From positions 1-64,000 of IMG/VR virus record IMGVR_UViG_3300028883_000032: a DNA stretch of 64,000 nucleotides; one strand, written 5' to 3'. Position numbers and translations under genes: made by a program. The notes under the pieces were generated by a model that ran no database searches, was not told where the DNA came from, and saw only the letters and a list, made by a program, of their open reading frames with translations. Positions 3,795 through 56,093 of this stretch are shown piece by piece (the stretch's first letter is position 1; each line of letters opens with the position of its first letter).

Positions 3795-4211
3795 ATGAAA
3801 ACAGAACATTTACAGCAATTACTTGTGTCCGGACAGTTTATAGGATCTCACATGTGCCTTGCCAAAGACATAGGATCAAACGGAAATCTCTTTGGGGGTA
3901 ACATGCTAGCTTGGGCAGACGAAATGGGTGCTATTTTTGCTAAAAAGTTTACTGGAGAACCAAAGCTCGTAACTGTTCAAATGGACGCGGTTGAATTCAC
4001 TGTTCCAGTACATGAAGGCGAAATAGTTGATTTCTATGCCGCTAACCCCAAACCCGGCCATACCAGTTTAACGTTCACTCTTGTTGTTGCCAAACCGAAC
4101 AATGCCGACGGGGTAAGACAAATTGTATTTACAACGCGATTTGTTTTCGTGGCTGTCGGCGATGATGGGCACTCCAAACCAATTGAAAGGTTTGCAGAAA
4201 AGCGCCCATAG
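3795..4211 (+). CDS. acyl-CoA thioesterase (hotdog fold)
   Basis: NGNLFGGNMLAWADE motif, VTVQMDAVEF, GHTS, FVFVAV; 3' end overlaps the tRNA. Confidence 0.85.
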   Translation: MKTEHLQQLLVSGQFIGSHMCLAKDIGSNGNLFGGNMLAWADEMGAIFAKKFTGEPKLVTVQMDAVEFTVPVHEGEIVDFYAANPKPGHTSLTFTLVVAKPNNADGVRQIVFTTRFVFVAVGDDGHSKPIERFAEKRP

Positions 4212-4274
4212 TTCAGTGGTTAGAACAGCGGACTCTAAATCCGTGTGTCCTCGGTTCAAGTCCGAGTGGGCGCA
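4202..4274 (+). tRNA. amber suppressor tRNA (CUA anticodon)
   Basis: GCGCCCA/TGGGCGC acceptor, anticodon stem GCGGA/TCCGT with loop CT-CTA-AA, T-loop TTCAAGT. Confidence 0.85.
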
Positions 4275-4287
4275 CAAAGGAGACCTA

Positions 4288-8821: not shown

Positions 8822-9358
8822 TTAACTCAAAGAATTTAGAATGTCATAAGCATTCTTTACTACATCACGAACTAGTGTTTTACCACCAGAGTAAACCCTT
8901 ACGATTGCGTTTTTTCTATTTACGTCCTTTTGAAATTTAGCGTTAGGGTAAATATCTAAGAAACCCTTAGCATCGCTTTTAGATTTTGCCAACACAACCA
9001 ATCTTATACTTTTGGCGCTATATACTTCAGTCAGCATTGAAGTTATTAAGTCTATTAAGTTTGGATCTTGGTTGCAAAATTGAAATATATTAGCTTTTTC
9101 TGTACGATACCCTTCACACAGATAAGCAATATGGCCTGCTATGCTAAGGTTAGTCTTTAATAAAGATTGATCCGGGTTTTGATGACTTACTCTGGGAAGA
9201 TAATTATATTCAGATGCACTACGCATAGAAATATTGTGAAATTTTAAATACTTACGAACTGTTTTGTGATCACATTTTAAAAGCATTCCAATTTCATAAG
9301 GATTTAATTTATCTTCTAAGTAGAGTTTTTCTAGTTCATGTTTAGTAAAATTCTTCAT
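8822..9358 (-). CDS. intron-encoded HTH + degenerate LAGLIDADG-like putative homing endonuclease
   Basis: 178 aa from MKNFTKHELEK; HTH (LYLEDKLNPYEIGMLLKCDHKTVRKYL) then IAYLCEG..FQFCNQDPNLI; antisense to the intron. Confidence 0.6.
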   Translation of the reverse strand: MKNFTKHELEKLYLEDKLNPYEIGMLLKCDHKTVRKYLKFHNISMRSASEYNYLPRVSHQNPDQSLLKTNLSIAGHIAYLCEGYRTEKANIFQFCNQDPNLIDLITSMLTEVYSAKSIRLVVLAKSKSDAKGFLDIYPNAKFQKDVNRKNAIVRVYSGGKTLVRDVVKNAYDILNSLS

Positions 9359-9626
9359 CCTGAGCCTTTGGTTAGAAATAACTAATTGAATTCGGCTATA
9401 TGCGGGAAACTCATAAAGCCTACAGTACCATACGTATACCAATAGTATACTAAATTGGAAATACGTTGTCAAGTAAAAATCTGTAGGATGTACAATTGAC
9501 AATCCGCAGGGAAGCCTGTAATGGCCCCTCAGAGACTAAACGCCGAACCCTTAACAGGTAATGCTGAAGGAGATGATATAGTCCAGACCACAACAGAATA
9601 TGGCTTGTGAAAGCAAGTGTGGTAAG
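8824..9626 (+). mobile_element. group I self-splicing intron (~803 nt) in the tRNA anticodon loop
   Basis: Core elements ATGCGGGAAACTC (P), AATCCGCAGGGAAG (Q), TCAGAGACTA (R), GATATAGTCC (S); ends in G; splice point +/-1 nt uncertain. Confidence 0.88.
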
Positions 9627-10777: not shown

Positions 10778-12417
10778 AAATTCCTTTATTTGTATCAACA
10801 TTCAATAGAATAGAGACTGTAAAACAATCATTGACAAGTCTTGCAAACTCAAACTTACCAGACTATGTCCAAGTAATCATTAGTGACGATGGATCAAGCG
10901 ATCCAGTTGTTCCACAAATTAAAAGGTTATATGGAAAGTTAGGTTGGGAAATACATGCGAACCATCATAGGGAGTTCCCCGAAGGAAAGTTGGCCCCTAT
11001 ACGAGAACATTTAGACAGGTTTCCAGATGCCCCATACTTTCTAGTTTCTGATTCTGATATGTTATACACCAAAAACTGGGTACAGGCTTTAGAAAAGATA
11101 TATCGTGACACTAAAAAGGATGGTGTAAATCCGGCCGTTATAACTGGTTTTGATACGGAGTGGAATCAACATAGAATAGTAGAAAGACATGGATATTGGG
11201 GATTTAAGGGAACTGTTGGTGGTGCAAACCTATTAGCAGATAGAGAATTTTACAATAAGTGGCAATGGAATGGAATGCATTGGGATTGGGGAATATGTTC
11301 AAAAGCAGGAGAATTTGATTACAAGCTCGTTAGCAGTTGTCCATCTTTAACTGAACATATTGGGAAACATGGTAAATTTTCAAAACCGGGTAAATATGAC
11401 GTAGCGGTTCATTTTGAAGGTGAAGATTTCGATGCCATGGAAATTTTTAATCCGGAGTATAAATACTTGAGTGAAACAGCACTAGTAACAGCAGGACAAG
11501 GGGTAGGAAACATAGTAATGGCTACTCCATTAATAGAAGCTCTGCACGATTTAGGATATATAGTAGATTTTATGGTTGGATGTAACTGGCCTAAAAGCAA
11601 AGAGTTGTTTTTTGAAAACCCACATTGTAGAAATGTTGCTTGGAGTAATGAGCATATAGATGGTTTCTATAATATAGTTGTTGAAACTGCTTGGAGTTTT
11701 TCTTCTTGGGAAGGAAAATATGCTACCAATAGGTTGGCACGACACGATCGCCACGTAAAAGTGGACAAATCAGTAGTTGACCACCAATACCGTAATCATG
11801 AAATCCACCATAACCTAACTCCAGCAATTCAGCTTGGTATGGATGAATCCAAGATGAACAGCTACAAGCCTTTTGTTAACACCCTAATGCCCCACAACTA
11901 TAATACTGATTCAAAGGTTATAGGAATTCATGCAGGGTGTAATCCAAGACCCGAATGGGAAGGTAAAAAATATCCGTACTATCAAGAGCTTGTTTACTTA
12001 TTAAAAAGAGACGGATATAAAATTGCACTATTTGGCACTGATACGGACCAACATTTAAAGGATGTTGATTATGACTTTATAGGAGCAACTAATGTCCAAG
12101 GAGCAGCAGAACGCATCGCTGGCTGTGATATATTTATTTCTAACGATTCTGGATTAATGCATTGTGCAGGCGCCAGCCAAATACCACAAATAGCTATATT
12201 TGGGGGCGAAGGTTACAAGAAAATGGTTAAAAACGACCCTCGACTATATAATGATAAGGCTATTGTAATTGGCGCGGAAGACTTAAGCACTATTTCTCCG
12301 GAACAGGTGATGGATACTCTCAAGTATGGTAAGTTCTCTAAAAATAAGTATCAAGGTAGTGTAGATATTCCAATTAAACCAAAAGTGAAGCGTAAAACAA
12401 CCACTAAAAAGAAATGA
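10774..12417 (+). CDS. bifunctional glycosyltransferase, GT2 (N-term) + GT9-like (C-term)
   Basis: IISDDGSSD/SDSD N-terminal; GVGNIVMATP and FISNDSGLMHCAGA..IAIFG C-terminal. Confidence 0.85.
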   Translation: MKIPLFVSTFNRIETVKQSLTSLANSNLPDYVQVIISDDGSSDPVVPQIKRLYGKLGWEIHANHHREFPEGKLAPIREHLDRFPDAPYFLVSDSDMLYTKNWVQALEKIYRDTKKDGVNPAVITGFDTEWNQHRIVERHGYWGFKGTVGGANLLADREFYNKWQWNGMHWDWGICSKAGEFDYKLVSSCPSLTEHIGKHGKFSKPGKYDVAVHFEGEDFDAMEIFNPEYKYLSETALVTAGQGVGNIVMATPLIEALHDLGYIVDFMVGCNWPKSKELFFENPHCRNVAWSNEHIDGFYNIVVETAWSFSSWEGKYATNRLARHDRHVKVDKSVVDHQYRNHEIHHNLTPAIQLGMDESKMNSYKPFVNTLMPHNYNTDSKVIGIHAGCNPRPEWEGKKYPYYQELVYLLKRDGYKIALFGTDTDQHLKDVDYDFIGATNVQGAAERIAGCDIFISNDSGLMHCAGASQIPQIAIFGGEGYKKMVKNDPRLYNDKAIVIGAEDLSTISPEQVMDTLKYGKFSKNKYQGSVDIPIKPKVKRKTTTKKK

Positions 12418-38920: not shown

Positions 38921-39629
38921 ATGCTCGACCCGTTAGGTGATAGAATGAAATCTTACGAACGTGTAACTAGTTCGGTGATTGTTCCCAGAACCCCGGTTAT
39001 CTTAAGGCTTGATGGGAGATCGTTTCATACTTTTACAAAAAAAACTTGATAAACCATTTGACGAGCGAATGAGACAAGCGATGTATGCAGCAATGGAATC
39101 GCTAATGTCTAGTATATCGGGAGCCGAAATTGGATTCACACAATCCGACGAAATAAGTATTTTTGTAAAAACTTATAATAAGTTTGAAACACAAGCTTGG
39201 CATGGTGGAAAAATACAAAAAATGATATCTTCTGCTGCAAGTATTGCAACAGCGTCTTTTATACAATACTTGAGTATGTTTGAAGCCCTTCAAAAACACG
39301 CATTTACAGCAACTTTTGATTGTCGTATATTCAACTTACCATTGGAGGAAGTCGCCAATTACTTCCTATGGAGAGGAAAAGATTGTTTTCGTAACGCAGT
39401 TATGGCTTACTATTTATCACTCAACTCGCATAAATCTGCGCAAAATAAAAGCACTTCAGAACTATTGGAGTTAATTCCAAAACACAACTGGAATACTGTT
39501 GCAGATGAGTCAAAATTTGGTATTTTACTATTTAAAGACAGTGATACAACTAAACGTTCTTACTCATGCCCGATAGGAGACATGTTAAAGAACGTAAACG
39601 ATGTAGTAAATCACAGAGAAGACCAATAG
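38921..39629 (+). pseudogene. tRNA-His guanylyltransferase Thg1-like, frameshifted at an A8 run (39037-39044)
   Basis: LGDRMKSYE..ILRLDGRSFHTFT in one frame continues KKLDKPFD..TQSDEIS..FDCR..NYFLWR in the next; A7 would restore the frame. Confidence 0.85.
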
Positions 39630-41716: not shown

Positions 41717-42559
41717 ATGAAGTTTACCTTTTTAGGCGTTGGGGGCATGTTCGCAAAAACTCTCGGCCATACCAACATACTAGTAGAGTTTACAAGCGGG
41801 TATAAGTTACTAATTGACTGTGGAAATAGAGCACCGCTTGAACTATACCAGCGAGGATTATACCCACAAGACATTAACGGGTATTATATATCCCACCTGC
41901 ATGACGACCATGTTGGAGGAATACAAGAATTGGGGCTGTTTGCATATTTCCACCCCAATTGCCATTTCAAGCCTGATTTGTTTATTGCCCAACAACTTCG
42001 TGGGGAAATTTGGAATAACTGTTTAATGGCCGGAATGTCCAGTATTGAAGGCAGTGTTATGTCCCTAGAAGATTACTTCAATGTTGTGTCTATTCCCCCT
42101 AATGGTTCTTTTGGCGTAGTAAAAGACCGCAGAGACGACTCTGAAAGCAGCGTCTTGGCCATTGATGCTAGGTTTGATGGTTGGAAATTATCCCCCGTTC
42201 AAACAGCACATTTCATGAATGGAAGAATAATTGTTCCATCCTTTGGGTTATTGTTTGAAAAAGGGGACGACAAACCAACCATTTTCATTACAACTGATAC
42301 CCAATTCGCACCCCATCAGATACAAGTGTTTTACGAAAAAGCTGATGTCATTTTCCAAGACTGCGAAGCGGCACCATATAAAAGCGGAGTTCACGCTCAT
42401 TTTGATGAGCTTGTCACTCTACCAGAAAAAATACGTAGGAAAATGTGGTTTGTACATTATCCTGATACTGTTCTCGAAGATATAAACACTTGGAAAATGA
42501 AGGCAAATGGAAGCGGGTTCCTTGGGTTTGTAAAAAAAGGACAAGAATTCGAGTTTTAA
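41717..42559 (+). CDS. MBL-fold metallo-hydrolase (RNase Z-like)
   Basis: FLGVGG, LIDCG, SHLHDDHVGG, TTDT, HAH, VHY. Confidence 0.88.
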   Translation: MKFTFLGVGGMFAKTLGHTNILVEFTSGYKLLIDCGNRAPLELYQRGLYPQDINGYYISHLHDDHVGGIQELGLFAYFHPNCHFKPDLFIAQQLRGEIWNNCLMAGMSSIEGSVMSLEDYFNVVSIPPNGSFGVVKDRRDDSESSVLAIDARFDGWKLSPVQTAHFMNGRIIVPSFGLLFEKGDDKPTIFITTDTQFAPHQIQVFYEKADVIFQDCEAAPYKSGVHAHFDELVTLPEKIRRKMWFVHYPDTVLEDINTWKMKANGSGFLGFVKKGQEFEF

Positions 42560-42560
42560 C

Positions 42561-43307
42561 ATGAACGAAAACGAAGCAAAGACTCAACTGATCTTGAAGG
42601 GGTATGGTGGGTCCATTGCTTACGGAACAAATACCCCATCAAGTGACGTTGATTTAAGGGGGGTATTTATTCCTCCAAAGGAGTACTGGGTCGGGTTAAA
42701 GAGTGTGGATCAAATAAATTTTTCCGCAGAAGACACGACTTTCTACTCTTTACAAAAATTCTTTATGTTGGCTATAAAAGCTAACCCAAACATCCTTGAA
42801 CTATTATGGTTACGAGATAATCATTACATTTGGAAAGACGTACCAAAAGATTTCCGTAGCCTAGGAAGAAAATTGATAAGTAATAGGAATCTTTTTCTTT
42901 CAAAAAACATAAAACACACATATACCGGCTATGCCTATTCTCAACTTCATAGAATGGATAAGTTAAACAAGAACGTAGCACAAAATGCAGACCGTACAGC
43001 TCGCGTAGAGAAATTCGGGTATGATACTAAAAATGCTATGCATTTGATACGGCTACTACGTACTGGTCTGGAGATTCTTACGGAAGGCGAATTACATGTA
43101 TTTCGAGAAGATGCCCGAGACCTTTTAGCCATCAAGGATGGGAAGTATACTTACGATGAGTTGGTGGAAAAAGCCCAGCGTTACGACGAACTCATTGAAG
43201 AGGCATATGTTCGCAGCCCATTGCCACATAAACCGGATTTTAATGCTATTCAGAATCTACACATGGAGATGGTGGAAGAAGCTCTATCCATTTTAAACAA
43301 AAGGTAA
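42561..43307 (+). CDS. predicted nucleotidyltransferase (pol beta-like superfamily)
   Basis: GSIAYGTNTPSSDVDLRGVF, NPNILE, GYDTKNAMHLIRLL. Confidence 0.85.
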   Translation: MNENEAKTQLILKGYGGSIAYGTNTPSSDVDLRGVFIPPKEYWVGLKSVDQINFSAEDTTFYSLQKFFMLAIKANPNILELLWLRDNHYIWKDVPKDFRSLGRKLISNRNLFLSKNIKHTYTGYAYSQLHRMDKLNKNVAQNADRTARVEKFGYDTKNAMHLIRLLRTGLEILTEGELHVFREDARDLLAIKDGKYTYDELVEKAQRYDELIEEAYVRSPLPHKPDFNAIQNLHMEMVEEALSILNKR

Positions 43308-44666: not shown

Positions 44667-44738
44667 GGCGCGATCGTCCAGTGGTCAGGACATCGGTTTT
44701 TCATGCCGGGAACCGGGGTTCAATTCCCCGTCGCGCTA
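44667..44738 (+). tRNA. tRNA-Glu(UUC)
   Basis: Cloverleaf, loop TT-TTC-AT. Confidence 0.92.
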
Positions 44739-44764
44739 CTATTTAATTTGGAAGACAAAGAGAA

Positions 44765-46372
44765 ATGAATCCAGAAGACGAAAGAAATACTACTTATACT
44801 CTTGGAAATATCGATCAATTTAGGTTCCAAATTGAACCTAACTTCACTGTTCGAGATGTAGAGCGGGCGAGACAACAAATAAATGCACTCGCTGCCCAAC
44901 ATTGGGGTGAAAGGTTACGTACACGACAAGAAGAGATTTTTGCACAATATCTAAACAGGCCAAATACCGAAGCACCTCAACAAGAGCTGCAAGCAGACCT
45001 GATTGGAGAGCTACGTCGCAATATGGAACACCAACAAACCGTACGTGACGATATGGCAGATGCTGCCCGTTGGGCATATGACGTGGGGGTTAGAGCAGGG
45101 CAGCTTGCTCAAGAAGAACAAATTGAAGAACAAGCCGTCGATAACCCAAATTATTTTGCTACAGAAGAAGAGTATACAAGGTATTTAGAAGAGCTGGATA
45201 CGGATACGCCTCCCTTGGTTGTGGAGGCCCCAAACCCAGAATTAATAAATATAACAAATGCCCCTGAAAAAGGAGAAACGACAACGATGGCAATAAATGT
45301 GGAAATACGCACAGCGAATAAATTTTCAGATCTTCAAAGACAAAAGATCAGAGAAATCGCTTCTGACGTGTTGGCGCCAGTAGTTGGTAAAAAAATTGTG
45401 ATAGCGCACAGAGGTAAAACTCAAAAACCAATCGAAGACGGGTGTTTCCATATTCATTGTTGGTCCTCCGTAAGAGGTAGACGAGTATATACTCCGCCCA
45501 GTGAATTATGGATATTTACTGTACAAGATCGATCAAAATCTTACAAACCGTCTGGAGACGGTTTAGCACTTAAAGCTGGACGATGGTCACACAGTGAGTT
45601 GGTAGGAAATAACCTCTACATTCATCACAATATATTTGCTGATCCCAATCGCCCATCGACGTATGATCTTGAATTGTTTAAGAAAATACTTGATGCCGTT
45701 ACACGCGCATACACAGACACTACCCCAGAATTGGATGAACTGGCAAAAACGAATTATGTAAATTTCTGCTTAAAGAGGAAAGACGATTCCATTAAACAGC
45801 TGGAAGACCGTAACGCTAAGGCACGTCAAGCTTTACAAAGTTCGGTACAAGCATCTCTACAGAAAATACGTTTGGCCAAACAGTCTCAATTTGATTTAAC
45901 TCAAGCACTGAACTCCAAACCGGCAGATATGCGTAAAAAATTTGAAATTGAGTTTGAACGTTTGTTGGAACATCCAAAAATTGTAAAAGTTAGAGTAACT
46001 AGCGGCAAGTTCATGGTTGACACGGAAACTTTATACTGTACAGATCCGCGTAGTAAGAAAGTACACGAAATCGGTAAGTTTTGCATCGAAATCAATCCGA
46101 ATACAGGTTCAATACGGTGGGATAATTTAACCCGTAAAGTGGACGGTATGCGTCGCAATATGAACGGTCCACATATTTGGGCAGATGGTCAGGCATGTAT
46201 GGGAAATACAAGTAGTTCGTTTCATTCACTTATCGCTAACTACGAACTAGCAATTGCCGCCCACCTTGCCATCGAATTTGTGGAAAGTGTAAATGTCAAC
46301 GACGGGGCCGGGGAACGTATTAATAATTGGCCTTTAGCCCCCGAAAAAATGCAAGCTAAAAAGGGTAAATAA
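44765..46372 (+). CDS. coiled-coil + prokaryotic E2-like conjugating enzyme (active Cys)
   Basis: C-terminal GPHIWADGQACMGN (PH..G..C.G; Cys478) followed by N.ND..G...WP; possible second start at 45287. Confidence 0.75.
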   Translation: MNPEDERNTTYTLGNIDQFRFQIEPNFTVRDVERARQQINALAAQHWGERLRTRQEEIFAQYLNRPNTEAPQQELQADLIGELRRNMEHQQTVRDDMADAARWAYDVGVRAGQLAQEEQIEEQAVDNPNYFATEEEYTRYLEELDTDTPPLVVEAPNPELINITNAPEKGETTTMAINVEIRTANKFSDLQRQKIREIASDVLAPVVGKKIVIAHRGKTQKPIEDGCFHIHCWSSVRGRRVYTPPSELWIFTVQDRSKSYKPSGDGLALKAGRWSHSELVGNNLYIHHNIFADPNRPSTYDLELFKKILDAVTRAYTDTTPELDELAKTNYVNFCLKRKDDSIKQLEDRNAKARQALQSSVQASLQKIRLAKQSQFDLTQALNSKPADMRKKFEIEFERLLEHPKIVKVRVTSGKFMVDTETLYCTDPRSKKVHEIGKFCIEINPNTGSIRWDNLTRKVDGMRRNMNGPHIWADGQACMGNTSSSFHSLIANYELAIAAHLAIEFVESVNVNDGAGERINNWPLAPEKMQAKKGK

Positions 46373-47734
46373 ATGTTTGATTTTACCGCACCTATATCCC
46401 CGGGTAGTGTATTTTGTTTTTTGTCTAATTTGTCAAAAAAACAACTAGATAAATTGGACAGCATGGGTGCTACTCCAATGCCTTTTGATCTTGATGGTGA
46501 ATCCGGGATTATTGTTGATGGCTCACAGATGGGTGATATAATACGTGAATTAGACCTAGACATCCTGACAACTGATGCTACTACCTATGATGGTGTATAC
46601 AACATTTTGTGGAGACCAAAAAAAGACGGTAGAGGAAAGGCAGAAGGAAACTCAAGAATTATTTTTGAGAATTCTGAAGTTTGTAGGTGGAATGGAAAAC
46701 TTCCAACCGCTGTCATGGAAAGCTCTATTGAAAGGTTTCTTCTTCCATCTTTAAGTAAAGACGTAAAGGTTCACCTATATGTTCCGCACGGGAGTAACCA
46801 TGGCTTAATAAATAATGGGGAATTTAACATATTTATTTGGTCGGGATTGGGACGAAAGGCAGCACTGACACCGAAGAAAATGTGGGGAATACCCGTTGAC
46901 TGTAAAGATAAACCGTTTGATTATTCAGGAAGCGGGTTAGCCATTTATGAATCAGGTGGAAACATCGTAGGCGAGTTAGTACAAAACAACCTCTACATTT
47001 TTCACGATCTTGTACACATGGGTACTCAGCGCGAAAAACAAATCTTCGAGCACATACTGGAAGAAGTTGTGTATCTAACACAAAACCCAGAAGCCGGTAT
47101 TGATAGGCAGGCTCAGCATTTAGCAGAAGTATTGGCCGCTGAATATCAAAATACTTATAAAGTGAGGGAACAGCAGTTAACCACAATTGAGGATGATATT
47201 CAAAGATATAAAGCCGTGCTAGTTGAGAAGATTAGAGCAGCGGATTCTGCTAAAATGATGGTTTTGGGAGCTGAAGAAGCTCTACGAGATATTCGAAGTG
47301 TGGCCAAGGAACAATTTCTGATACTGCGCAGCAACGACAAAATTGAACGTATTGAACCGTCTGGAGATTGTGTAACAATTTACACCAAACGGTTAATTTG
47401 TACTCACCCCGTAAGTCAAAAACAATACGGCATTGGAAACTTTAAAATTATTATTCATTTAACCGGTCATCCAACTATGGTTGAATGGCACAACTTGACT
47501 AGACAGAGTGATTGCCAAGCACCCCATGTTGAACTATCAGGTTATCCCGTAGCGGGAATGACGGAAGAGATGTTCTTGGAGTTACTCGGAAATTATCAAA
47601 TAGGAATAATCGGAAACTTAGCAATTCAGTTTATAGAAACGGTAGATCCTACCCATCCAACAGCTGAACGCTTGAAAAAGTTTCCCCTTCTTAAGGAATC
47701 GATAGAAACTGATGGCAAAGAAAAAACCAAATAA
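46373..47734 (+). CDS. paralogous coiled-coil + E2-like protein lacking the catalytic Cys (UEV-like)
   Basis: Aligns with the previous gene (ELVQNNLYIFH vs ELVGNNLYIHH; WHNLTR vs WDNLTR); APHVELSGYPVAG has Val at the Cys position. Confidence 0.7.
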   Translation: MFDFTAPISPGSVFCFLSNLSKKQLDKLDSMGATPMPFDLDGESGIIVDGSQMGDIIRELDLDILTTDATTYDGVYNILWRPKKDGRGKAEGNSRIIFENSEVCRWNGKLPTAVMESSIERFLLPSLSKDVKVHLYVPHGSNHGLINNGEFNIFIWSGLGRKAALTPKKMWGIPVDCKDKPFDYSGSGLAIYESGGNIVGELVQNNLYIFHDLVHMGTQREKQIFEHILEEVVYLTQNPEAGIDRQAQHLAEVLAAEYQNTYKVREQQLTTIEDDIQRYKAVLVEKIRAADSAKMMVLGAEEALRDIRSVAKEQFLILRSNDKIERIEPSGDCVTIYTKRLICTHPVSQKQYGIGNFKIIIHLTGHPTMVEWHNLTRQSDCQAPHVELSGYPVAGMTEEMFLELLGNYQIGIIGNLAIQFIETVDPTHPTAERLKKFPLLKESIETDGKEKTK

Positions 47735-48605
47735 AAAAAGAGCTGCCCAGTACTTTATACCTCACGATTTTAAAGAAGAGGTAGAAGTGCTTAACCAGTC
47801 TTCTTACTGTATATGGATGACCCCGCTAGCCTTTCAAAAAATGTGGCATTTTGTCGATATTTGTAGTCAAGAAGTTGGCTGGCTTGGATCGGTTGAACGA
47901 GAGGGAAGAAATTTCATTATAACCGATGTTTTCATGTTTGAGCAAGAAGTTACAGGGACTACAACATCTCTCGATGAAGCTGGCCAGACTAAACTTATGG
48001 AAAATTTTCTGGCACAAGAGAATGGTACAGAGCTTTATAACTCTATAAGGTTCTGGGGACATAGTCATGTTAACATGGGAACAACTCCAAGTGGTCAAGA
48101 TGAAACCACAATGAAGGAATTCGAAGAAAATGGCTGTGCGTGGTTTATAAGAGGCATATTCAACAAAAGAGGACGAGCACAGTTTGATATATTTTTATAC
48201 GACGAAGGTGTACGAGTAAACGATGTTCGTTGGGCAATTCTTGTTGAAATGCCGGAATTTGATATCCGCAAAGAGTTGGAAACTGAAATACAAAAGAAGG
48301 TTACCACAAAAAAGTATGTATATCCTTCGTACGCAGGTGGATGGGGAGGAGGAAATGGCTATGACCCTACCAAGAGGACTGGGAATGGTACTGTTAACCA
48401 CTCAGTCCACCCTACTGTAGGTCAAGGGAACCGCTCATCGTCACAGCAGGGAAATGTCTGGGACGAATTTTATACGGCAAATCCAAGCGGAACTCTTGAC
48501 CTAGATGAAGACGACGAAGGAACAACCTTTTTCAACAATAATGGAGTTGTTGAAGAACTAAAACCAGAAACTAAAAAAGAGACAAAAAAGGACAAAACTA
48601 AATGA
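47712..48605 (+). CDS. JAB/MPN-family metalloprotease
   Basis: QEVGWLG..EQEVTG..WGHSHVNMGTTPSGQD; low-complexity tail. Confidence 0.88.
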   Translation: MAKKKPNKKRAAQYFIPHDFKEEVEVLNQSSYCIWMTPLAFQKMWHFVDICSQEVGWLGSVEREGRNFIITDVFMFEQEVTGTTTSLDEAGQTKLMENFLAQENGTELYNSIRFWGHSHVNMGTTPSGQDETTMKEFEENGCAWFIRGIFNKRGRAQFDIFLYDEGVRVNDVRWAILVEMPEFDIRKELETEIQKKVTTKKYVYPSYAGGWGGGNGYDPTKRTGNGTVNHSVHPTVGQGNRSSSQQGNVWDEFYTANPSGTLDLDEDDEGTTFFNNNGVVEELKPETKKETKKDKTK

Positions 48606-49294
48606 TCGATCCTTTACGTCACTTGGCTATTTTTGATCCTGATGCCTTTGGTCCCCGACGAGTTGATGTAATAGGTGTGGGTGCAACTGGATCAAAAGTT
48701 GTGTTGGAACTTGCAAAACTCGGCATAGTTAACATTCACGTATGGGATTATGACAAAGTCGAAGAACACAATGTTCCCAACCAAGTTTTTGGAAATGATC
48801 ATGTTGGGATGTTCAAAGTTGACGCCATATCAAAAATTGTCAAGGCACAAACTGGTATTGACTTAGTAACTCATAACGAAGAAGTAGACGGTACTCAAAC
48901 TTTTGGTGATATAGTATTCTTGCTAACCGACACCATGAAAAGCCGTAAATCAATCTTTGAGAGGGGCATTAAATATAAATTTAATGTCAAATTAATGATT
49001 GAAACGCGGATGGGAAAAGACAGCGGGCAGATATACTCCATCATTCCGACAAAACCGGATCACATCAAAAATTGGGAAAATTCCCTGTTTAGCGATGATG
49101 ACAAAGATACTGAAGTATCTCTATGTGGAAGTACAATAACTGTTGGGTCAACTGCCGGAATAATTTCGGGCCTAGCGGTTTGGAAAGTCATTGAATGGCT
49201 TCAACACGAAACCGGCAAACTGGAAAATGGAATTGCTAACGAAACAATGATTGATATTTCCCCCAAGTTAGCAGTTTATCAAAACAAATATTAA
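48602..49294 (+). CDS. ThiF/E1-like activating enzyme
   Basis: GVGATGS, WDYDKVEEHNVPNQ, KV, TDTMKSR, ETRMG, candidate catalytic Cys SLCG. Confidence 0.92.
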   Translation: MIDPLRHLAIFDPDAFGPRRVDVIGVGATGSKVVLELAKLGIVNIHVWDYDKVEEHNVPNQVFGNDHVGMFKVDAISKIVKAQTGIDLVTHNEEVDGTQTFGDIVFLLTDTMKSRKSIFERGIKYKFNVKLMIETRMGKDSGQIYSIIPTKPDHIKNWENSLFSDDDKDTEVSLCGSTITVGSTAGIISGLAVWKVIEWLQHETGKLENGIANETMIDISPKLAVYQNKY

Positions 49295-49314
49295 CTCAGG
49301 AGTAGAATTTCAAG

Positions 49315-49524
49315 ATGGAACCTATTCAAGTACGTGTAGGAACAATTCCTGGTGGAGTCTCCGAATTTGCAATCATAGATGCAACAGTTCGTGGAGCACT
49401 TACAGCAGCAGGCCTTGAGGCGGACGGTTACAAAATCAATGTAAACGGCGTGGCAGCTAACTTAGACACACCGTTACGAGATGGTGATAATGTTCTTCGT
49501 GTTCGCAAGGTTGTTGGTAACTAA
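49315..49524 (+). CDS. ubiquitin-like (ThiS/MoaD-fold) protein ending GN
   Basis: 69 aa; ATVRGAL..INVNG..LDTPLRDGDNV..KVVGN. Confidence 0.85.
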   Translation: MEPIQVRVGTIPGGVSEFAIIDATVRGALTAAGLEADGYKINVNGVAANLDTPLRDGDNVLRVRKVVGN

Positions 49525-49531
49525 TGTTACT

Positions 49532-49566
49532 AGAAGAGCGGAAATATTTATATACCGCTCTTTTTT
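49532..49566 (+). terminator. rho-independent terminator
   Basis: AAGAGCGG..CCGCTCTT + T run after the Ubl gene. Confidence 0.75.
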
Positions 49567-49639
49567 ACCCCAAAATGGAATAAGAATATAGCAGGGACTC
49601 TTAAGGTAGAGGCCCGTAAAGCTAAATTGGGAGGATAGC

Positions 49640-50431
49640 ATGAAGCTACTTGAGTGGACCATAGCTGGAGGATTAGACGCCCCCATGGTCTTGTGTGAGG
49701 CTAATGCAGTGTTCGGGTCGCTGAATGTCAAACGACCAATGTGGGCAAGAGTTGTAACATCAATGGGTCACGAAATACCCCCATATCTTAAAAGCTGTAT
49801 GCATGGGTTAGATGGGCTTTTAACTGAAGCTACACTACTTATCAATCGAGCTATTCTCCCAGGAATGGGAGAACAGGCAATGGTAAACATGCCGGAATCT
49901 CCAGCAGGAGAAACCAGAATAGAGTTTCTAACTCCTGGAGGAGTGAAGTTTAGCATAACCAAACATTTAGAACTTTCTTCCCTCAATGTTGCATGGAGAT
50001 TTGGAAGAAATAGTCACTACGCAGCCAATAGGGTACTTCAAGGGTTACTGACTTGTGCGCCAACAAGAGAAACAGCCTTAATACTTGACCATCTATCTGA
50101 CTTAATAAGGAGTTGGAAGATCGAGGTAGGGGGTAATGGACCAACCTCTAATTTCAAAATTGGCCAATGCTTTTCATATCCGAATAACTATGGAAGCTGG
50201 CTTTATATAACAACCACTAAAGAGGCGTGCTATGCTGTAGCAAAAGTGACAGCTCCTGAAACCAATCTTGGGTTGGGGGTATTGGGAAAAGATTTAGACC
50301 CAACATCCCCCAAAAACCAGTGGCTAAATCATGTAGCAGTAGTTGTGGGGAGGGATGAAAGGGGAACTATCGCCGCTTACCACTCTGATTTCCATTACTA
50401 CTTCTTGCACCTTCAAAGAAAATACAGATAG
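49640..50431 (+). CDS. hypothetical protein
   Basis: 263 aa, GGAGG RBS, flanked by terminators. Confidence 0.65.
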   Translation: MKLLEWTIAGGLDAPMVLCEANAVFGSLNVKRPMWARVVTSMGHEIPPYLKSCMHGLDGLLTEATLLINRAILPGMGEQAMVNMPESPAGETRIEFLTPGGVKFSITKHLELSSLNVAWRFGRNSHYAANRVLQGLLTCAPTRETALILDHLSDLIRSWKIEVGGNGPTSNFKIGQCFSYPNNYGSWLYITTTKEACYAVAKVTAPETNLGLGVLGKDLDPTSPKNQWLNHVAVVVGRDERGTIAAYHSDFHYYFLHLQRKYR

Positions 50432-50473
50432 TTGCGGGGATGCGACCAAGATAACAACCAGTGTTATCTTGAG

Positions 50474-50500
50474 AAGAGGCCAGCATGTTGGCCTCTTTTT
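50474..50500 (+). terminator. rho-independent terminator
   Basis: AAGAGGCC-agcatgtt-GGCCTCTT + TTT. Confidence 0.75.
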
Positions 50501-50569
50501 AAACATTTATGTAAATTTAGAATTTTTATGGTATAAGATTTTATCGTCGCGCTTTAGGCTTGCTTAAAG

Positions 50570-51345
50570 TACGACATCGGCCGCATGGGTCGTTAGACAT
50601 AAACCTTGAAAGAGGTGGATAGGGGCGTTGGCAACGTCCGGTCGTAGACAGTCAAAATGCAATCCGTTCCTCCTTCCTTAAAATTCCCGAGGGCAACGCT
50701 GTAGGCGAACCAACTGGAAGGACTCGAAACGAGACAACCAAAACTGGTGTGGACAAGTAACACGTGGTGGTGACTTGGAAACGTACCAACCAATTAATGG
50801 TGAATCGGACGGAAAGGTGGTGTGGTTAGATCGGCTCCTGTTAGAGTCGGTGTGGCTATCTACCATTCAAGGAATTTCTAGACCAGAAATCTAGAAAAAC
50901 TGCGAATCGGGGGACCAACAGGCCTCTGTGATGGAGTAGAGTATTTCGTTGCTCAAAAGGTAACGAAGCTCAAATCCCAGCGCTTCATCAGCCGAGAATT
51001 TTTAACAGATTCGCTCGGGTACGAGCACTTACTATCAATAAGTGAGATCATTTAAAGCACAAGACTGGGACGTGCTGAAACCTAAAGATGCCTCCGCCTT
51101 TAGTGGCCCTTAATTACTCGCAAGGTAATTAAGTTGTGTCGGAAACTAACTTTGCCCCGGCCAGGGTAAAGGGAGTGGTAAGATGCAGAAAGGTTCAGCT
51201 GGAAGACATGTGAAACCAATCTCGGGTTCACGGCATTTCCTACATACGTAAAGACATTTGCGTGGACACACCCTAAACCCAAATATTATGGGAATGTGGG
51301 GGTAAAAGTGTAGGATCAAATAGTCACGTCTAAACTATTTGATTT
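50570..51345 (+). ncRNA. large structured ncRNA, GOLLD-like candidate
   Basis: ~770 nt without a + strand ORF, many hairpins (CTCGAAACGAG, TTTCTAGA..TCTAGAAA, TTCGTTGCTCAAAAGGTAACGAA, TTAATTACTCGCAAGGTAATTAA); tRNA-rich phage context; terminal hairpin + T run. Confidence 0.6.
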
Positions 51346-51382
51346 TTTTAGCCTAAAATGGAATAAGAGTGTATACAAACTC

Positions 51383-52061: not shown

Positions 52062-52901
52062 ATGAACATTTTACTAAATGATGGGGATTTTGTCGTATTA
52101 GCCCATACTACACCAACAAATTTTGAAACAGATGATTTGATGGAAATAGTCAAAAAAGCGGCTACTACTTGTTACCAGAGCGAACAAAAGACACATAAAA
52201 ACCCGCAAGAATTTGCAAAAATGCTTTTGGGACGTGGGCACATGAGCATGTTTGATCATGTCCATGTTACAGTGCTATTTAAAAATGTGTCCCGTGGGTT
52301 TACCCACGAATTGGTGAGGCACAGAATAGCAGCCTACGCCCAAGAAAGCACACGATACGTTGATCCTGGTAATATTAAAGTTGTAGGACCGCCCCATAGA
52401 AATTTAGATGAACAAATAACTATCGAAACTAATTTAGATGATGGATCAATAGCGTATAAAGAAATAACATTTAGAGAGATGGTAAAAGAAGTAGAAAGAT
52501 TTTATCGCGGTTTACGCAATAGTGGGTGGTCTCAAGAAGATGCCCGTCAAATCTTACCCATAGGTATTAAATCTGAAATAGTTATGACGGCAGATTTAAC
52601 GGAGTGGAGACACACATTTCGTTTGCGCACGCAGAAAGCGGCACATTGGGAAATACGCGGGGTAATGAATAAATTATTAAAGCACTTTAAAGAAGTGTTT
52701 CCCCCGGTATTTGATGATTTTATCATAGCCGGTAAGGATGAAAACGAATTAGAATACTACAAAATAAAAGGATACGTTGGCGACATAACGAAAATGGTAA
52801 ACCAAGCATTAGAGCAATATGTGGCAGAAAATACTTTGGGAAATGACCAAGCAAGTCATTTTGCCAACTATCTCAATAGTTATTACAACCAAAATTACTA
52901 A
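52062..52901 (+). CDS. thyX: FAD-dependent thymidylate synthase
   Basis: GHMSMFDH, SRGFTHELVRHR..AQESTRY, EDARQILP, LRTQKAAHWEIR. Confidence 0.95.
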   Translation: MNILLNDGDFVVLAHTTPTNFETDDLMEIVKKAATTCYQSEQKTHKNPQEFAKMLLGRGHMSMFDHVHVTVLFKNVSRGFTHELVRHRIAAYAQESTRYVDPGNIKVVGPPHRNLDEQITIETNLDDGSIAYKEITFREMVKEVERFYRGLRNSGWSQEDARQILPIGIKSEIVMTADLTEWRHTFRLRTQKAAHWEIRGVMNKLLKHFKEVFPPVFDDFIIAGKDENELEYYKIKGYVGDITKMVNQALEQYVAENTLGNDQASHFANYLNSYYNQNY

Positions 52902-54760: not shown

Positions 54761-55159
54761 ATGACAAAAACTGAATTTCGAGAATTGTGGAAAGCTGCAG
54801 AAGAAAGCGGATTAGATAGATTCACTGTTATCTACTTAAGTTCCGGAGCCAAACACAATGGGCTGCTAGGAGAAATACTATTCAAACAGAATAGTATAGG
54901 AAACTCATACCCGAGTGTATTTTTTTCAGGAACGGGGCAAAGAATTACTACCTCCCTCGACAAATTAGTTGCAACGGAACAAAATTTTATTCGAACTCCA
55001 AAGGAACTGCAACCTGGATTAGAAATCTTGGTTATGGCTAATGAAGGTTCATTAGATATTGTTAATGAATCAGAAGCAATAAAGAAATTACAAAAAGATC
55101 CCAAAACAAAAATATTTACGTGTTTAATACGAAAGCAAGTTGAATTAAGACTTGTGTAA
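54761..55159 (+). CDS. hypothetical protein
   Basis: 132 aa, AAGGA RBS. Confidence 0.6.
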   Translation: MTKTEFRELWKAAEESGLDRFTVIYLSSGAKHNGLLGEILFKQNSIGNSYPSVFFSGTGQRITTSLDKLVATEQNFIRTPKELQPGLEILVMANEGSLDIVNESEAIKKLQKDPKTKIFTCLIRKQVELRLV

Positions 55160-56093
55160 TCAAGGAGATAAAAATGCTGGGAGCTCTACGGGCCTAATGG
55201 CCCCCCACAAAGTTATTGATGTAGTACAAGAAGAGTTTTATAAAGTAAATTTAACTTTAGACAATAATTTTAGATTGTCACCCCCAGACAAAACAACAAA
55301 TTTTACAACGGCAGGAATGCAGTGGTTTAAGAACCGCTTTAATAATCCGGACGGGACAAGATGTGGTAGCAGACAATCTTGTTTACGTACAAACGATTTG
55401 TCCTTAATTGGGGACGGGACACATTTAACCTATTTTGAAATGCTGGGAAATTTTTCATTTGGAAATAACGATTATGAACAATCGGTAGAATTGTGGCACA
55501 ATATTGTTTCTCAATTAAAAATCCCAGTTACATATGTTACGGTACACCCGTCACAAAAATACCATAAGAGAGTTTGGGAGAGGTTGCATTACCCCATAAA
55601 AGAAGACGAAAGCTGCGTGTGGTCAGACGGTAATATCGGAGGATACTGTTGTGAAATGTTTGTTAATGACCTCGAAATCGGGAATCTGGTAAATACTTCT
55701 GGAGTTTCAACAGATGTGGGTTTTGGTTTTGAGAGGTTAGTACAAGTTTATGAAAACCAAACAAATATTCATGACACAACTTTGTTTGATTGCTCTTTAC
55801 CTCCTTTTGTCAGAGACCACGTTCGCGCCTTGAATGCGTTATATCTTAACGGTATAAAACCGGGAGCAAGTGGACCAAATTACTCCGCCAAACTAATACT
55901 CAGAAGAGTACTATCTCATCTTGACCCAAAATGTTATAAGTTTGGGCACTGGTTAGAACAAGAAAAACTAATTAGTGAAGATGGTAAGTACAGAGCTAAA
56001 AAACACTTTAACCGCTATGGTATTAAAGACTATGACTTTGTTAAAGCCACATTTGGTTTAACAGCCGAAGAATATGAGGAAGTACTATCGTGA
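55152..56093 (+). CDS. truncated alanyl-tRNA synthetase-like protein (catalytic core only)
   Basis: DKTTNFTTAGMQ.FK, QSCLRTNDL..IGDGTHLTYFEMLGNFSF, EIGNLV, DVGFGFERL, RDHVRA..G.KP...GPNY...LILRR. Confidence 0.85.
   Translation: MCNQGDKNAGSSTGLMAPHKVIDVVQEEFYKVNLTLDNNFRLSPPDKTTNFTTAGMQWFKNRFNNPDGTRCGSRQSCLRTNDLSLIGDGTHLTYFEMLGNFSFGNNDYEQSVELWHNIVSQLKIPVTYVTVHPSQKYHKRVWERLHYPIKEDESCVWSDGNIGGYCCEMFVNDLEIGNLVNTSGVSTDVGFGFERLVQVYENQTNIHDTTLFDCSLPPFVRDHVRALNALYLNGIKPGASGPNYSAKLILRRVLSHLDPKCYKFGHWLEQEKLISEDGKYRAKKHFNRYGIKDYDFVKATFGLTAEEYEEVLS

Follow-up and report, generated by a model that had tools for sequence, protein, structure and literature searches.

Ubiquitin-like conjugation in bacteria (CBASS Cap2, Bil, Bub) has only recently been shown to exist and to act in phage defence. 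The Bil (BilABCD) ISG15-like antiphage operons encode a Ubl, an E2, a JAB peptidase and a multidomain IAD-AAD-CYS E1; there is no E3 and the E2 is presumed to choose targets, the Ubl needs C-terminal trimming, tandem beta-grasp Ubls occur, and the type II E2 carries a CEHH motif (PMC11601596, bioRxiv 10.1101/2023.09.26.559546). Type II CBASS (Cap2/Cap3) has an E2-E1 fusion protein next to a CD-NTase and an effector. Cys-less E2/RWD-like domains were predicted in bacterial operon type 6e in 2006 (PMC1779556), and that operon family, since renamed Bub (Ubl-E2 or E2-E1 fusion, JAB-E1 fusion, DUF6527 serine protease), was later shown to have a functional E2, its only one, that works through Ser-His chemistry and serine oxyesters (PMC11601596). 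Operon type 6d of Iyer, Burroughs and Aravind combines separate Ubl, JAB, E1-like and E2-like genes with an alpha-helical protein in one mobile cassette, its E2-like protein lacking the His before the Cys and having one after it (PMC1779556). ThiS/MoaD sulfur carriers end in Gly-Gly and act with a ThiG, ThiH or MoaE-type partner and no E2. In eukaryotes, Ubc13-Mms2/Uev1a pairs an active E2 with a Cys-less variant (UEV) of the same fold, which is maintained by selection and binds the acceptor non-covalently to direct chain linkage.

Here we examine a ubiquitin-like tagging cassette of a huge phage from marine sediment, in which the probable tagging enzyme lies next to a paralogue that has lost the active-site cysteine. 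An earlier note had described the pair as a tandem active E2 and Cys-less E2 variant sharing an N-domain and a coiled coil, and had proposed a coiled-coil heterodimer in which the dead copy positions the acceptor or substrate, a role it did not recognise from prokaryotic systems.

Results

The window, a 64,000-nucleotide stretch of the phage sequence, contains the following features of the cassette.

44765..46372, + strand: gene A, 535 aa, with a helical N-terminal extension, one N-domain, a helical stalk and an E2-like C-domain with the catalytic-type Cys
44765..45289, + strand: A residues 1-175, a lineage-specific helical extension replacing the family's usual N-terminal domain (NTD)
45290..45658, + strand: A N-domain (residues ~176-298), an alpha/beta module of unknown fold
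45659..45970, + strand: A helical, coiled-coil-like stalk (residues ~299-402)
45971..46369, + strand: A C-domain (residues 403-535), a probable diverged E2/UBC-like catalytic domain
46196..46198, + strand: Cys478 codon of A, the putative Ubl-thioester site
46373..47734, + strand: gene B, 453 aa, with NTD, one N-domain, helical stalk and a Cys-less C-domain
46415..46642, + strand: B NTD (residues 15-90), family-typical, of unknown fold, absent from A
46652..47020, + strand: B N-domain (residues ~94-216)
47021..47332, + strand: B helical stalk (residues ~217-320), the same length as that of A
47333..47731, + strand: B C-domain (residues 321-453), a degenerate E2-like domain
47549..47551, + strand: Val393 codon of B at the catalytic-Cys column
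47712..48605, + strand: JAB/JAMM metallopeptidase, 297 aa, overlapping the end of B by 23 nt
48602..49294, + strand: minimal single-domain ThiF-type E1, 230 aa
49315..49524, + strand: ThiS-like ubiquitin-like protein, 69 aa, ending RKVVGN
49640..50431, + strand: orphan 263-aa gene, possibly co-transcribed, of uncertain membership
50469..50502, + strand: terminator-like hairpin (15 pairs plus a T run), the likely operon end

The observation made in the earlier note is confirmed. Both ORFs are real and adjacent, and the motifs it had cited are present. BLASTP of A against B gave 28% identity over 367 aligned residues (E 5e-33), covering the N-domain, the stalk (A 299-402, with only small gaps) and the C-domain, which is far beyond chance. 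A has the motif PH-x7-C-MGN, with the Cys codon within PHIWADGQACMGN, whereas the aligned codon of B, within PHVELSGYPVAGM, is Val. One correction was required, because the shared part starts only at about residue 176 of A: the preceding extension has no counterpart in B, and the NTD of B is lacking in A. A contig produced by an independent assembler from the probable source run covers 44700-49600 with no differences at a word depth of 44; only that run holds the sequence among the reads, and therefore there is no independent sample and no RNA evidence. A read-through fusion of A and B was rejected, since the TAA stop of A is followed directly by the ATG of B and all three stop codons end long ORFs in the window. 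The gene junctions are of 0 nt or overlapping, and a consensus scan found no + strand terminator-like site between 44765 and 50431, the only such hairpin lying after the 263-aa gene.

The AlphaFold2 model of A, built with an 80-sequence alignment, had a mean pLDDT of 80.9, with most of the N-domain and C-domain above 90 (the N-domain from residue ~190, lower at its N-terminal edge; the C-domain at 97). The extension contains helices 29-63, 72-126 and 134-144 at low to medium pLDDT, and the stalk helices 299-317, 321-383 and 386-402. An NTD profile matched B at E 1.5e-16 but gave no hit to A even at E 10, and found no Pfam match and only weak, unrelated PDB hits. The N-domain, of which B has one profile hit, gave no PDB hit. 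We considered whether it might be a second degenerate E2 domain, but hhalign against the C-domain gave a probability of 0.3% and ESM Atlas feature scores of 0.42-0.47 are too low to use. A metalloenzyme was also rejected, as the HHD..H consensus string is not conserved, only one Glu is nearly invariant, and A and B both deviate from the string.

A and B belong to a large family, with 3,146 representative clusters (50% identity) at E<=1e-3 and 895 at E<=1e-30, for which Pfam, NCBIfam, PHROGs and PADLOC contain no matching model. Pfam on 80 full-length members gave only coiled-coil noise, and the only PDB hits of the full-length profile were coiled coils such as keratin, BAP31 and TPR, at E 0.2-9. 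The usual layout is an NTD, 0-5 N-domains, a ~100-aa helical stalk and a 130-aa C-domain. The family protein normally sits in a cassette with a JAB peptidase, a minimal ThiF-type E1 and a Ubl ending Gly-Asn, and by our count these four occur together in about 40 distinct loci, from Saccharibacteria, Parcubacteria, Obscuribacterales, Flavobacteriaceae, Thermoanaerobaculia and Gammaproteobacteria MAGs, two huge phage contigs and many metagenome contigs. The collection of cultured phages gave no DNA or protein match for the cassette, B or the 263-aa gene, and one weak hit for A. A viral structure library returned only uncharacterised phage proteins, and a word-index search with the C-domain profile for short standalone E2-like relatives gave one unrelated hit.

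The genes following A and B fit a conjugation cassette. The JAB peptidase matched PADLOC JAB models at E 1.8e-4, and E54, H117-x-H119, S127 and D130 are conserved at 98-100% in 53 homologues. The E1 matched Pfam ThiF at E 5e-22, over residues 20-209, and GxGxxG, D49/D51, R115, R136 and S173-x-C175-G are conserved at 97-100% in 42 homologues. The Ubl matched Pfam ThiS at E 0.0033, below the curated cut-off; homologous Ubls are found in the other cassettes, and 32 of 35 readable tails are GN or GN plus one residue. The 263-aa gene had no family, PDB or phage match and is absent from every other cassette, and we therefore rejected it as a conserved fifth component.

Comparison with described systems

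All four part types of Bil are present, the E2 part being an inference, and here too there is no E3, tandem beta-grasp Ubls occur, and the Ubl is inferred to need C-terminal trimming. However, the E1 is a single ThiF domain and not the multidomain protein defined for Bil (PMC11601596), the family carries N...PH-x7-C-LGN on a long multidomain protein rather than CEHH, the Ubl tail is a conserved Gly-Asn, and this copy is phage-encoded. In NCBIfam and PADLOC the E1 gave only ThiF-type and CBASS-type hits and A and B gave none; whether those libraries hold Bil models was not examined. The CBASS type II arrangement was not found: the E1 is a separate protein whose adenylation region alone is matched by PADLOC E1-E2 models, and no CD-NTase occurred among the neighbouring genes scanned. 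As in Bub, there are Cys-less E2-like domains with JAB and E1 parts, but the genes are separate, no DUF6527 hit was found in the six cassette proteins, a Cys-bearing copy is present alongside, and the dead copies share no substitute nucleophile. Like operon type 6d, the cassette has separate Ubl, JAB, E1-like and E2-like genes, but the family has an invariant His 8 residues before the Cys, no Pfam model (including the Prok-E2 families, which cover such prokaryotic E2s) matches it, and no separate alpha-helical protein is present. The cassette does not have the features of a ThiS/MoaD sulfur-carrier system, given the GN tails and the absence of ThiG, ThiH, MoaE or TtuA-type partners from the Pfam-annotated cassette neighbourhoods. 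A Cys-bearing E2-like gene was found to be always present, although one locus (L007; L numbers denote individual loci of the family) has a lone family copy with Tyr at the Cys column.

One of the closest parallels is Ubc13-Mms2/Uev1a. Ubc13-containing entries (5ait, 1j7d, 4nrg, 6jky) are among the best structural matches of A, and dead copies of this family are maintained by selection as well. In contrast, both partners here are multidomain proteins, pairing is proposed through the stalk rather than the E2-UEV face, dead copies arose several times independently and are sometimes fused to the active domain, and no sequence-level membership in UQ_con or UEV was found.

Evidence for an E2-like C-domain

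The E2 assignment rests on convergent but individually weak evidence. No curated E2 profile (UQ_con, Prok-E2_A-E, E2-CBASS, UFC1) matched A or B, and among 80 C-domains only one touched UQ_con, at E 0.058. A UBC fold has an N-terminal helix, an antiparallel beta-meander, an active-site loop and then two to four helices. The AF2 model has a helix at 386-402, six strands at 406-454, a loop at 455-481 and four helices, and seven of the eight best Foldseek PDB hits for full-length A are E2 chains (UBE2H, Ubc13, UbcH7, Ube2W), with probability up to 0.87. However, these lie at E 0.04-0.3, none reaching E 0.001, with TM-scores normalised by target of 0.39-0.45, and the C-domain model cut off from the preceding helix finds only UbcH7, at E 0.089; the fold comparison does not settle whether this is a UBC fold. 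A catalytic-type Cys does lie at the distance expected of an E2, in the loop about 8-10 residues after a conserved His-containing motif: P469 and H470 are invariant and C478 is conserved at 90% or more across 80 members. HMMER aligns UBE2W HPHVYSNGHICL to the family's aPHVfsdGkaCLGn, although this is not significant on its own (E 1.5). All named ESM Atlas neighbours of residues 384-535 are E2 families, with a structural TM of 0.50 to a bacterial UQ_con cluster. Thioester formation was not assayed and is supported only by the adjacent E1, Ubl and JAB genes.

Recurrence of dead copies

The C-domain of B matches the family profile at E 5e-38 and by our count keeps 12 of 17 invariant or nearly invariant columns, but has lost the Cys and most of the SVNxxDxaG...W motif. 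It has an E2-type fold lacking the catalytic Cys, as a UEV-type inactive variant does, conditional on the fold assignment above. The earlier note had asked whether the loss of the Cys is conserved in homologues, or whether these retain the Cys or decay as pseudogenes. Cys-less or His-less copies accompany an active copy, usually lying between it and JAB, in L008, L017, L039, L048/L050, L059, L071 and L073, while L041 has the same arrangement but keeps the Cys and has lost the His. Active and dead C-domains are fused in one protein in L015, L016, L037, L049 and six of the top 150 representatives. Eleven dead domains form one clade and their eleven active partners another, which indicates co-divergence; the L008 pair is a separate recent duplication and B is not in the old clade, so there are at least three origins. 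The dN/dS of dead C-domains is 0.08-0.17, against 0.08-0.18 for active ones. B itself has no close relative and selection on it could not be measured, and its branch, the longest in the tree, is four times that of A (2.13 against 0.51 substitutions per site), which also fits relaxed constraint. Pairing with a dead copy is optional, as some cassettes have two active copies (L033, L057) and L007 has only the Tyr copy. The domain loss in our pair is complementary, since A has lost the NTD and B keeps it, and in old-clade pairs the NTD is strong in the dead copy and weak in the active one.

Discussion

We propose, with moderate confidence, that A and B are tandem paralogues of a family forming the conjugating (E2-like) component of a compact ubiquitin-like modification cassette. 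In this view the JAB peptidase would trim the Ubl precursor, removing the terminal Asn or trailing residues or separating tandem Ubls, and the E1 would adenylate the exposed C-terminus and probably hold it on its conserved SxCG cysteine. The Ubl would then pass to Cys478 of A, in a diverged UBC-like domain with the motif PH-x7-C-LGN, and A would transfer it to a target recognised by the non-catalytic modules (N-domains, NTD), because the cassette has no E3. B cannot carry the Ubl at the equivalent site, and the neighbouring conserved loop is also degenerate. It is proposed to be a non-catalytic partner that pairs with A through the equal-length stalks and contributes the NTD plus an inert E2-like domain, amounting to a division of labour between two descendants of an ancestral homo-oligomer. 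The paralogy, the conservation of the cassette and its active sites, the recurrence, fusion and purifying selection of dead domains elsewhere and the complementary domain loss are results of our analyses, whereas all steps of the mechanism are inferred. No interaction between A and B was modelled or measured, and the evidence for a stable complex is only indirect, from the tandem genes, the fused active-plus-dead proteins, the co-divergence and the complementary NTD loss. Neither the target nor the role in the phage was identified. The precedent of Bub also shows that bacterial E2-like domains that seem inactive can be catalytic through another nucleophile.

The interpretation in the earlier note is partly supported. 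The paralogy, the shared N-domain and stalk, the loss of the Cys in B and the operon context fit, and cooperation of the dead copy with the live one gains strong indirect support from recurrence, fusion, purifying selection and complementary NTD loss. The E2 label is plausible but not proven, and nothing tested here supports the idea that the pair builds chains or positions an acceptor as Mms2 does, binding of an acceptor Ubl not having been assayed. The claim of no prokaryotic precedent needs qualifying in view of operon type 6e, and Cys-less does not automatically mean dead.

Other explanations seem unlikely, but were considered. B might be a regulator or decoy, titrating the E1-Ubl intermediate, the Ubl, the target or A itself in a dominant-negative way, and so limiting or timing conjugation during infection. 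This would be consistent with its retention of fold-defining residues and NTD without the catalytic apparatus, its translation directly after A, and the fact that cassettes work without a dead copy in most loci, which makes it an add-on. However, fusion of active and dead domains fixes a 1:1 stoichiometry, which is odd for an inhibitor, and co-divergence and equal purifying selection fit a constitutive partner at least as well.

Slightly more doubtful is that the C-domain is not an E2 at all, but perhaps a cysteine-based sulfur-relay or other transferase serving a ThiS-type carrier. All of the E2 evidence is sub-threshold, the E1 is of the minimal ThiF/MoeB type, the Ubl is ThiS-like, and tRNA-related genes are nearby in the window and in locus L002. 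On the other hand, four independent weak signals all point to E2 and to nothing else, the Ubl ends in GN, tandem or extended Ubl precursors need a peptidase, and no sulfur-carrier partner was seen in the annotated neighbourhoods.

It is less likely still that B is a recent duplicate drifting towards loss. Its long branch, its lost motifs and our failure to find an orthologue of B are in favour of this. Against it, B is an intact 453-codon frame with perfect gene junctions, most of the conserved C-domain columns and a strong NTD match, it is the only source of the NTD in this cassette, and analogous dead copies elsewhere are under purifying selection. Finally, catalysis by B through another nucleophile, as suggested by Bub (PMC1779556, PMC11601596) and by the retained His of the PH motif with Ser389 and Thr397 nearby, is the least likely. 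Against it, the residue at the Cys column is Val in B and D, Y, M, F, L, V or S in other degenerate copies, with no common nucleophile, and the adjacent loop is lost in B.

A broader possibility, which we put forward only tentatively, is that this is one instance of a widespread, undescribed conjugation system of candidate-phyla bacteria, Melainabacteria, other MAGs and huge phages, with more than 3,000 protein clusters, a new multidomain E2 class, a minimal E1 and a Ubl ending Gly-Asn. Within it, dead E2 paralogues would have evolved repeatedly as obligate partner subunits, by complementary domain loss and even by fusion, a prokaryotic and viral parallel to Ubc13-UEV that arose independently of eukaryotes.

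The cassette would be a fourth type beside CBASS Cap2, Bil and Bub, abundant and without a model in the four libraries searched, and because its conjugating protein carries its own putative recognition modules it would add a new E2 architecture. All of its parts are small and soluble-looking, and the conserved Gly-Asn tail is an unexplained biochemical signature. The family offers natural experiments on how E2-pseudo-E2 pairs arise at every stage, from single gene to tandem pair, fused pair and arrays of three or four, and the presence of a complete cassette in a phage raises the question of whether phages use Ubl tagging on host or phage proteins.

Genomic setting of the two genes

The region under study is part of a 206,856-bp viral contig (IMGVR_UViG_3300028883_000032, also Ga0272443_10000067) from a marine-sediment metagenome. 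Nearly all long ORFs are on the + strand and there are 21 tRNA genes in this window alone, which gives the look of a huge phage. One of these tRNAs (4202-4275, called tRNA-Pyl by ARAGORN) has a CUA anticodon and could act as an amber suppressor, although TAG ends 9 of 55 long + strand frames and these counts left undecided whether TAG is recoded. A full-length group I intron match (Rfam RF00028, 71 bits, E 5e-16) was found at 9345-9604. Closer to the genes of interest, an Apyc1-like anti-Pycsar metallo-beta-lactamase-fold gene (Pfam E 4e-24) is followed by an RlaP-type nucleotidyltransferase (E 1e-22) at 41717-43307, just upstream of the cassette and separated from it by tRNA genes. A Thg1-like tRNA-His guanylyltransferase (39006-39629), a ThyX thymidylate synthase (52062-52901) and a short alanyl-tRNA-synthetase-like gene (55149-56093) flank the region.

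The features considered here are the following.

44765-46372, gene A (535 aa)
46196-46198, Cys codon of A
46373-47734, gene B (453 aa)
47549-47551, Val codon of B aligned with the Cys codon of A
49315-49524, 69-aa ThiS-like protein
49640-50431, orphan 263-aa gene
50469-50502, strong terminator-like hairpin

The TAA stop of A is followed directly by the ATG of B. An independently assembled Logan contig of the probable source run covers 44700-49600 without a single difference. The earlier note had described A and B as tandem proteins that align throughout, with the cysteine of the first replaced in the second, and this observation is confirmed. A BLASTP comparison of A against B gave 28% identity over 367 columns (E 5e-33), collinear from A residue 178 and B residue 107 to the C-termini, and every motif cited in the note is present. 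One addition concerns the N-termini: A residues 1-175 are a helical extension with no counterpart in B, and B residues 15-90 are a domain that most family members have and A lacks.

B overlaps a 297-aa gene with the complete JAMM signature, E...HxH-x7-S-xx-D. This is followed by a 230-aa single-domain ThiF-type E1 (Pfam E 5e-22), the 69-aa ThiS-like protein (the Ubl), which ends RKVVGN, the orphan 263-aa gene, which has no match in any library searched or in any related locus, and the terminator-like hairpin. No + strand terminator-like site lies inside the operon. After the hairpin come about 880 bp (50503-51382) with no ORF of note and no Rfam match.

The protein family and its gene cassette

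A and B hit no model in Pfam, NCBIfam, PHROGs or PADLOC. A word-index search found only five relatives, whereas an exhaustive profile search of 1.84 billion representatives found 3,146 clusters at E<=1e-3 and 895 at E<=1e-30. None of 80 members examined carries a Pfam domain other than coiled-coil noise. The usual architecture is an N-terminal domain (NTD) of ~80 aa, 0-5 copies of a ~125-aa N-domain (one copy in 102 of the 154 proteins in hand and two in 40), a ~100-aa helical stalk and a ~130-aa C-domain. The C-domain has invariant G, N, P-H and P, and a nearly invariant PH-x7-C-LGN plus an SVNxxDxaG...WP segment. The N-domain and the NTD match nothing known.

To examine the genomic company of the family, we gathered 74 loci (numbered L001 and upwards) from assemblies, species-representative genomes, viral contigs and metagenomes, and annotated them with profiles built from the proteins of the window. 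The family protein sits with the same JAB, E1 and Ubl in about 40 distinct loci by our count, most often in the order family-JAB-E1-Ubl. Named sources include Saccharibacteria, Parcubacteria, Obscuribacterales, Flavobacteriaceae, Thermoanaerobaculia and Gammaproteobacteria MAGs; one lies on a 1.2-Mb contig, and some sit beside housekeeping genes. A second huge phage contig (L010 / L056, IMGVR_UViG_3300014204_000114, 187,794 bp) carries two cassettes a few kb apart, one of which has all four genes, while no Ubl was found after the second. Both of its family proteins are Cys-bearing and lack the N-domain.

Within the cassette, JAB residues E54, H117, H119, S127 and D130 are 98-100% conserved, and the nucleotide-binding and catalytic residues of the E1, together with an S-x-C-G loop, are 97-100% conserved. 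The Ubl tail is Gly-Asn, alone or with one extra residue, in 32 of 35 readable cases (many loci, among them the window at 49315-49524 and L001 at 11187-11606), and it is unexplained why the Asn is conserved if the peptidase merely exposes Gly. Some loci encode tandem di- or tri-Ubls, each ending GN, or Ubls with long C-terminal extensions, so a processing peptidase makes sense.

Probable relationship of the C-domain to E2 enzymes

AF2 with an 80-sequence alignment gave a confident model for both globular domains of A, most of each exceeding pLDDT 90, and the C-domain modelled alone reached pLDDT 97 and pTM 0.90. The predicted order of elements is a helix, a beta-meander, a long loop carrying P469-H470 and C478, and then four helices. 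With the full-length model, seven of the eight best PDB matches are E2 chains, namely UBE2H, Ubc13 (several entries), UbcH7 and Ube2W, although the scores are modest (E 0.04-0.3, probability up to 0.87, TM by target 0.39-0.45). The C-domain model, cut so that it lacks the preceding helix, keeps only UbcH7, at E 0.089. A family profile searched against PDB sequences places aPHVfsdGkaCLGn on HPHVYSNGHICL of UBE2W, which is Cys on Cys but at E 1.5, and one of 80 members touches Pfam UQ_con at E 0.058. In the ESM Atlas, every named neighbour of residues 384-535 is an E2 family (UQ_con, Prok-E2_D, UFC1, E2-CBASS) at score 0.69-0.74, and the best named structural neighbour is a bacterial UQ_con cluster at TM 0.50. 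None of these results is significant alone. However, all point the same way, and the cassette has an E1, a Ubl and a deconjugating or processing peptidase but no other E2 candidate. We consider the E2-like assignment likely.

Recurrence of copies with a degenerate active site

We aligned all C-domains from the loci to the profile and read the active-site columns. Separate dead second genes, each alongside a Cys-bearing copy, were found as listed below.

Table. Residues at the active-site columns of separate dead second genes
Locus; His column; Cys column; note
Window (B); H kept; V
L008; H kept; D
L017; Y; S
L039; N; Y
L041; N; C kept
L048, L050, L061; T; M
L059; Y; M
L064; N; V; contig is cut upstream, so the partner is not seen
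L071; N; Y; array: active, dead, active
L073, L074; C; L; array: three active, then one dead

Where there are two copies, the degenerate one is the one next to JAB. Some relatives carry arrays of three or four family paralogues before JAB-E1-Ubl (L073 966-10369, on a 224-kb contig; L074; L071 2774-11269), which suggests sets of alternative or co-assembling subunits. Active and dead C-domains lie in a single polypeptide in L015, L016, L037 and L049, and the same is true of six of the 150 best representatives. On the other hand, some loci have two active copies (L033, L057), and L051 has a lone copy with Asp at the His column but the Cys kept. L007 (2132-5259) has a lone copy with Tyr at the Cys column, in a cassette whose Ubl ends Gly-Gly instead of Gly-Asn; this could be a variant chemistry, a decaying cassette or a sequencing error.

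In the phylogeny of the C-domains, eleven dead domains form one clade (SH-aLRT 91) and their eleven active partners form another (SH-aLRT 90). This indicates an old duplication followed by co-divergence, with gene fusion in one branch. The L008 pair is its own recent clade (SH-aLRT 96). B is not in the old clade and sits on a very long branch (2.13 against 0.51 for A). An AU test does not reject A and B as sisters (p 0.41). The minimum number of state changes on the tree is 3-5.

The earlier note had stated that homologues decaying as pseudogenes would count against its reading. Nei-Gojobori dN/dS for dead C-domains between related loci is 0.08-0.17, the same range as for the active domains of the same loci (0.08-0.18). 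Some dS values exceed 1 and are near saturation. The cleanest pair, L048/L050, has dS 0.70 and dN/dS 0.084. The homologous dead copies therefore do not decay, which answers this condition of the earlier note.

The NTD profile matches B at E 1.5e-16 and does not match A at all. In four old-clade pairs the dead copy has the strong NTD match (about 6e-8 to 2.5e-12) and the active copy a weak one (0.076 to 8e-5). In this phage the catalytic Cys is therefore found only in A and the NTD only in B. Duplicated subunits of a homo-oligomer that have divided the ancestral functions would show this pattern, and it is the best argument here that A needs B. By our count from the alignment, B keeps 12 of the 17 invariant or nearly invariant C-domain columns, and those it has lost are the Cys and the N, D, G and W of the SVNxxDxaG...W segment. 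By inference, that segment may correspond to the loop after helix 2 of E2s that flanks the active site.

Proposed mechanism and alternative explanations

We propose that JAB trims the Ubl, that the E1 adenylates it, that the Ubl passes to Cys478 of A, and that A transfers it to a target selected by the N-domain and NTD modules of an A-B hetero-oligomer held together by the stalks, with B as a non-catalytic subunit. Each of these steps is inferred. What the computations themselves show is the paralogy of A and B, the conservation of the cassette and of its active sites, the recurrence, fusion and selection of dead domains, and the complementary domain content; they identified neither a target nor a role in infection, and gave no information on chain formation. 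The A-B relation works like Ubc13-Mms2, the eukaryotic pair cited in the earlier note, in outline only.

Other explanations can be considered. B might be a regulator or decoy, the C-domain might not be an E2 at all, or B might be a drifting duplicate. Perhaps B is instead catalytic through another nucleophile, a possibility for which the work on Bub matters: operon type 6e was described in 2006 as carrying inactive E2/RWD-like domains (PMC1779556), and the same operon family, renamed Bub, has a functional E2 that works through a Ser-His oxyester (PMC11601596). Here the residues at the Cys column (V, D, Y, M, F, L, S) offer no shared nucleophile, and we consider this explanation unlikely, although it is not excluded for B.

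By its list of parts the cassette is closest to Bil (Ubl, E2, JAB, E1, and no E3). However, it fails the defining multidomain E1 of Bil, and its E2-like protein has a different motif and architecture. It is not CBASS type II, Bub, or a sulfur-carrier system. A search of the full-text literature turned up no description of this family or of active/dead E2-like pairs in phages or bacteria, although a prior description elsewhere cannot be excluded. The interpretation given in the earlier note is supported in part, and in one respect it is strengthened, because dead copies turn out to be a selected, recurrent and sometimes fused feature.
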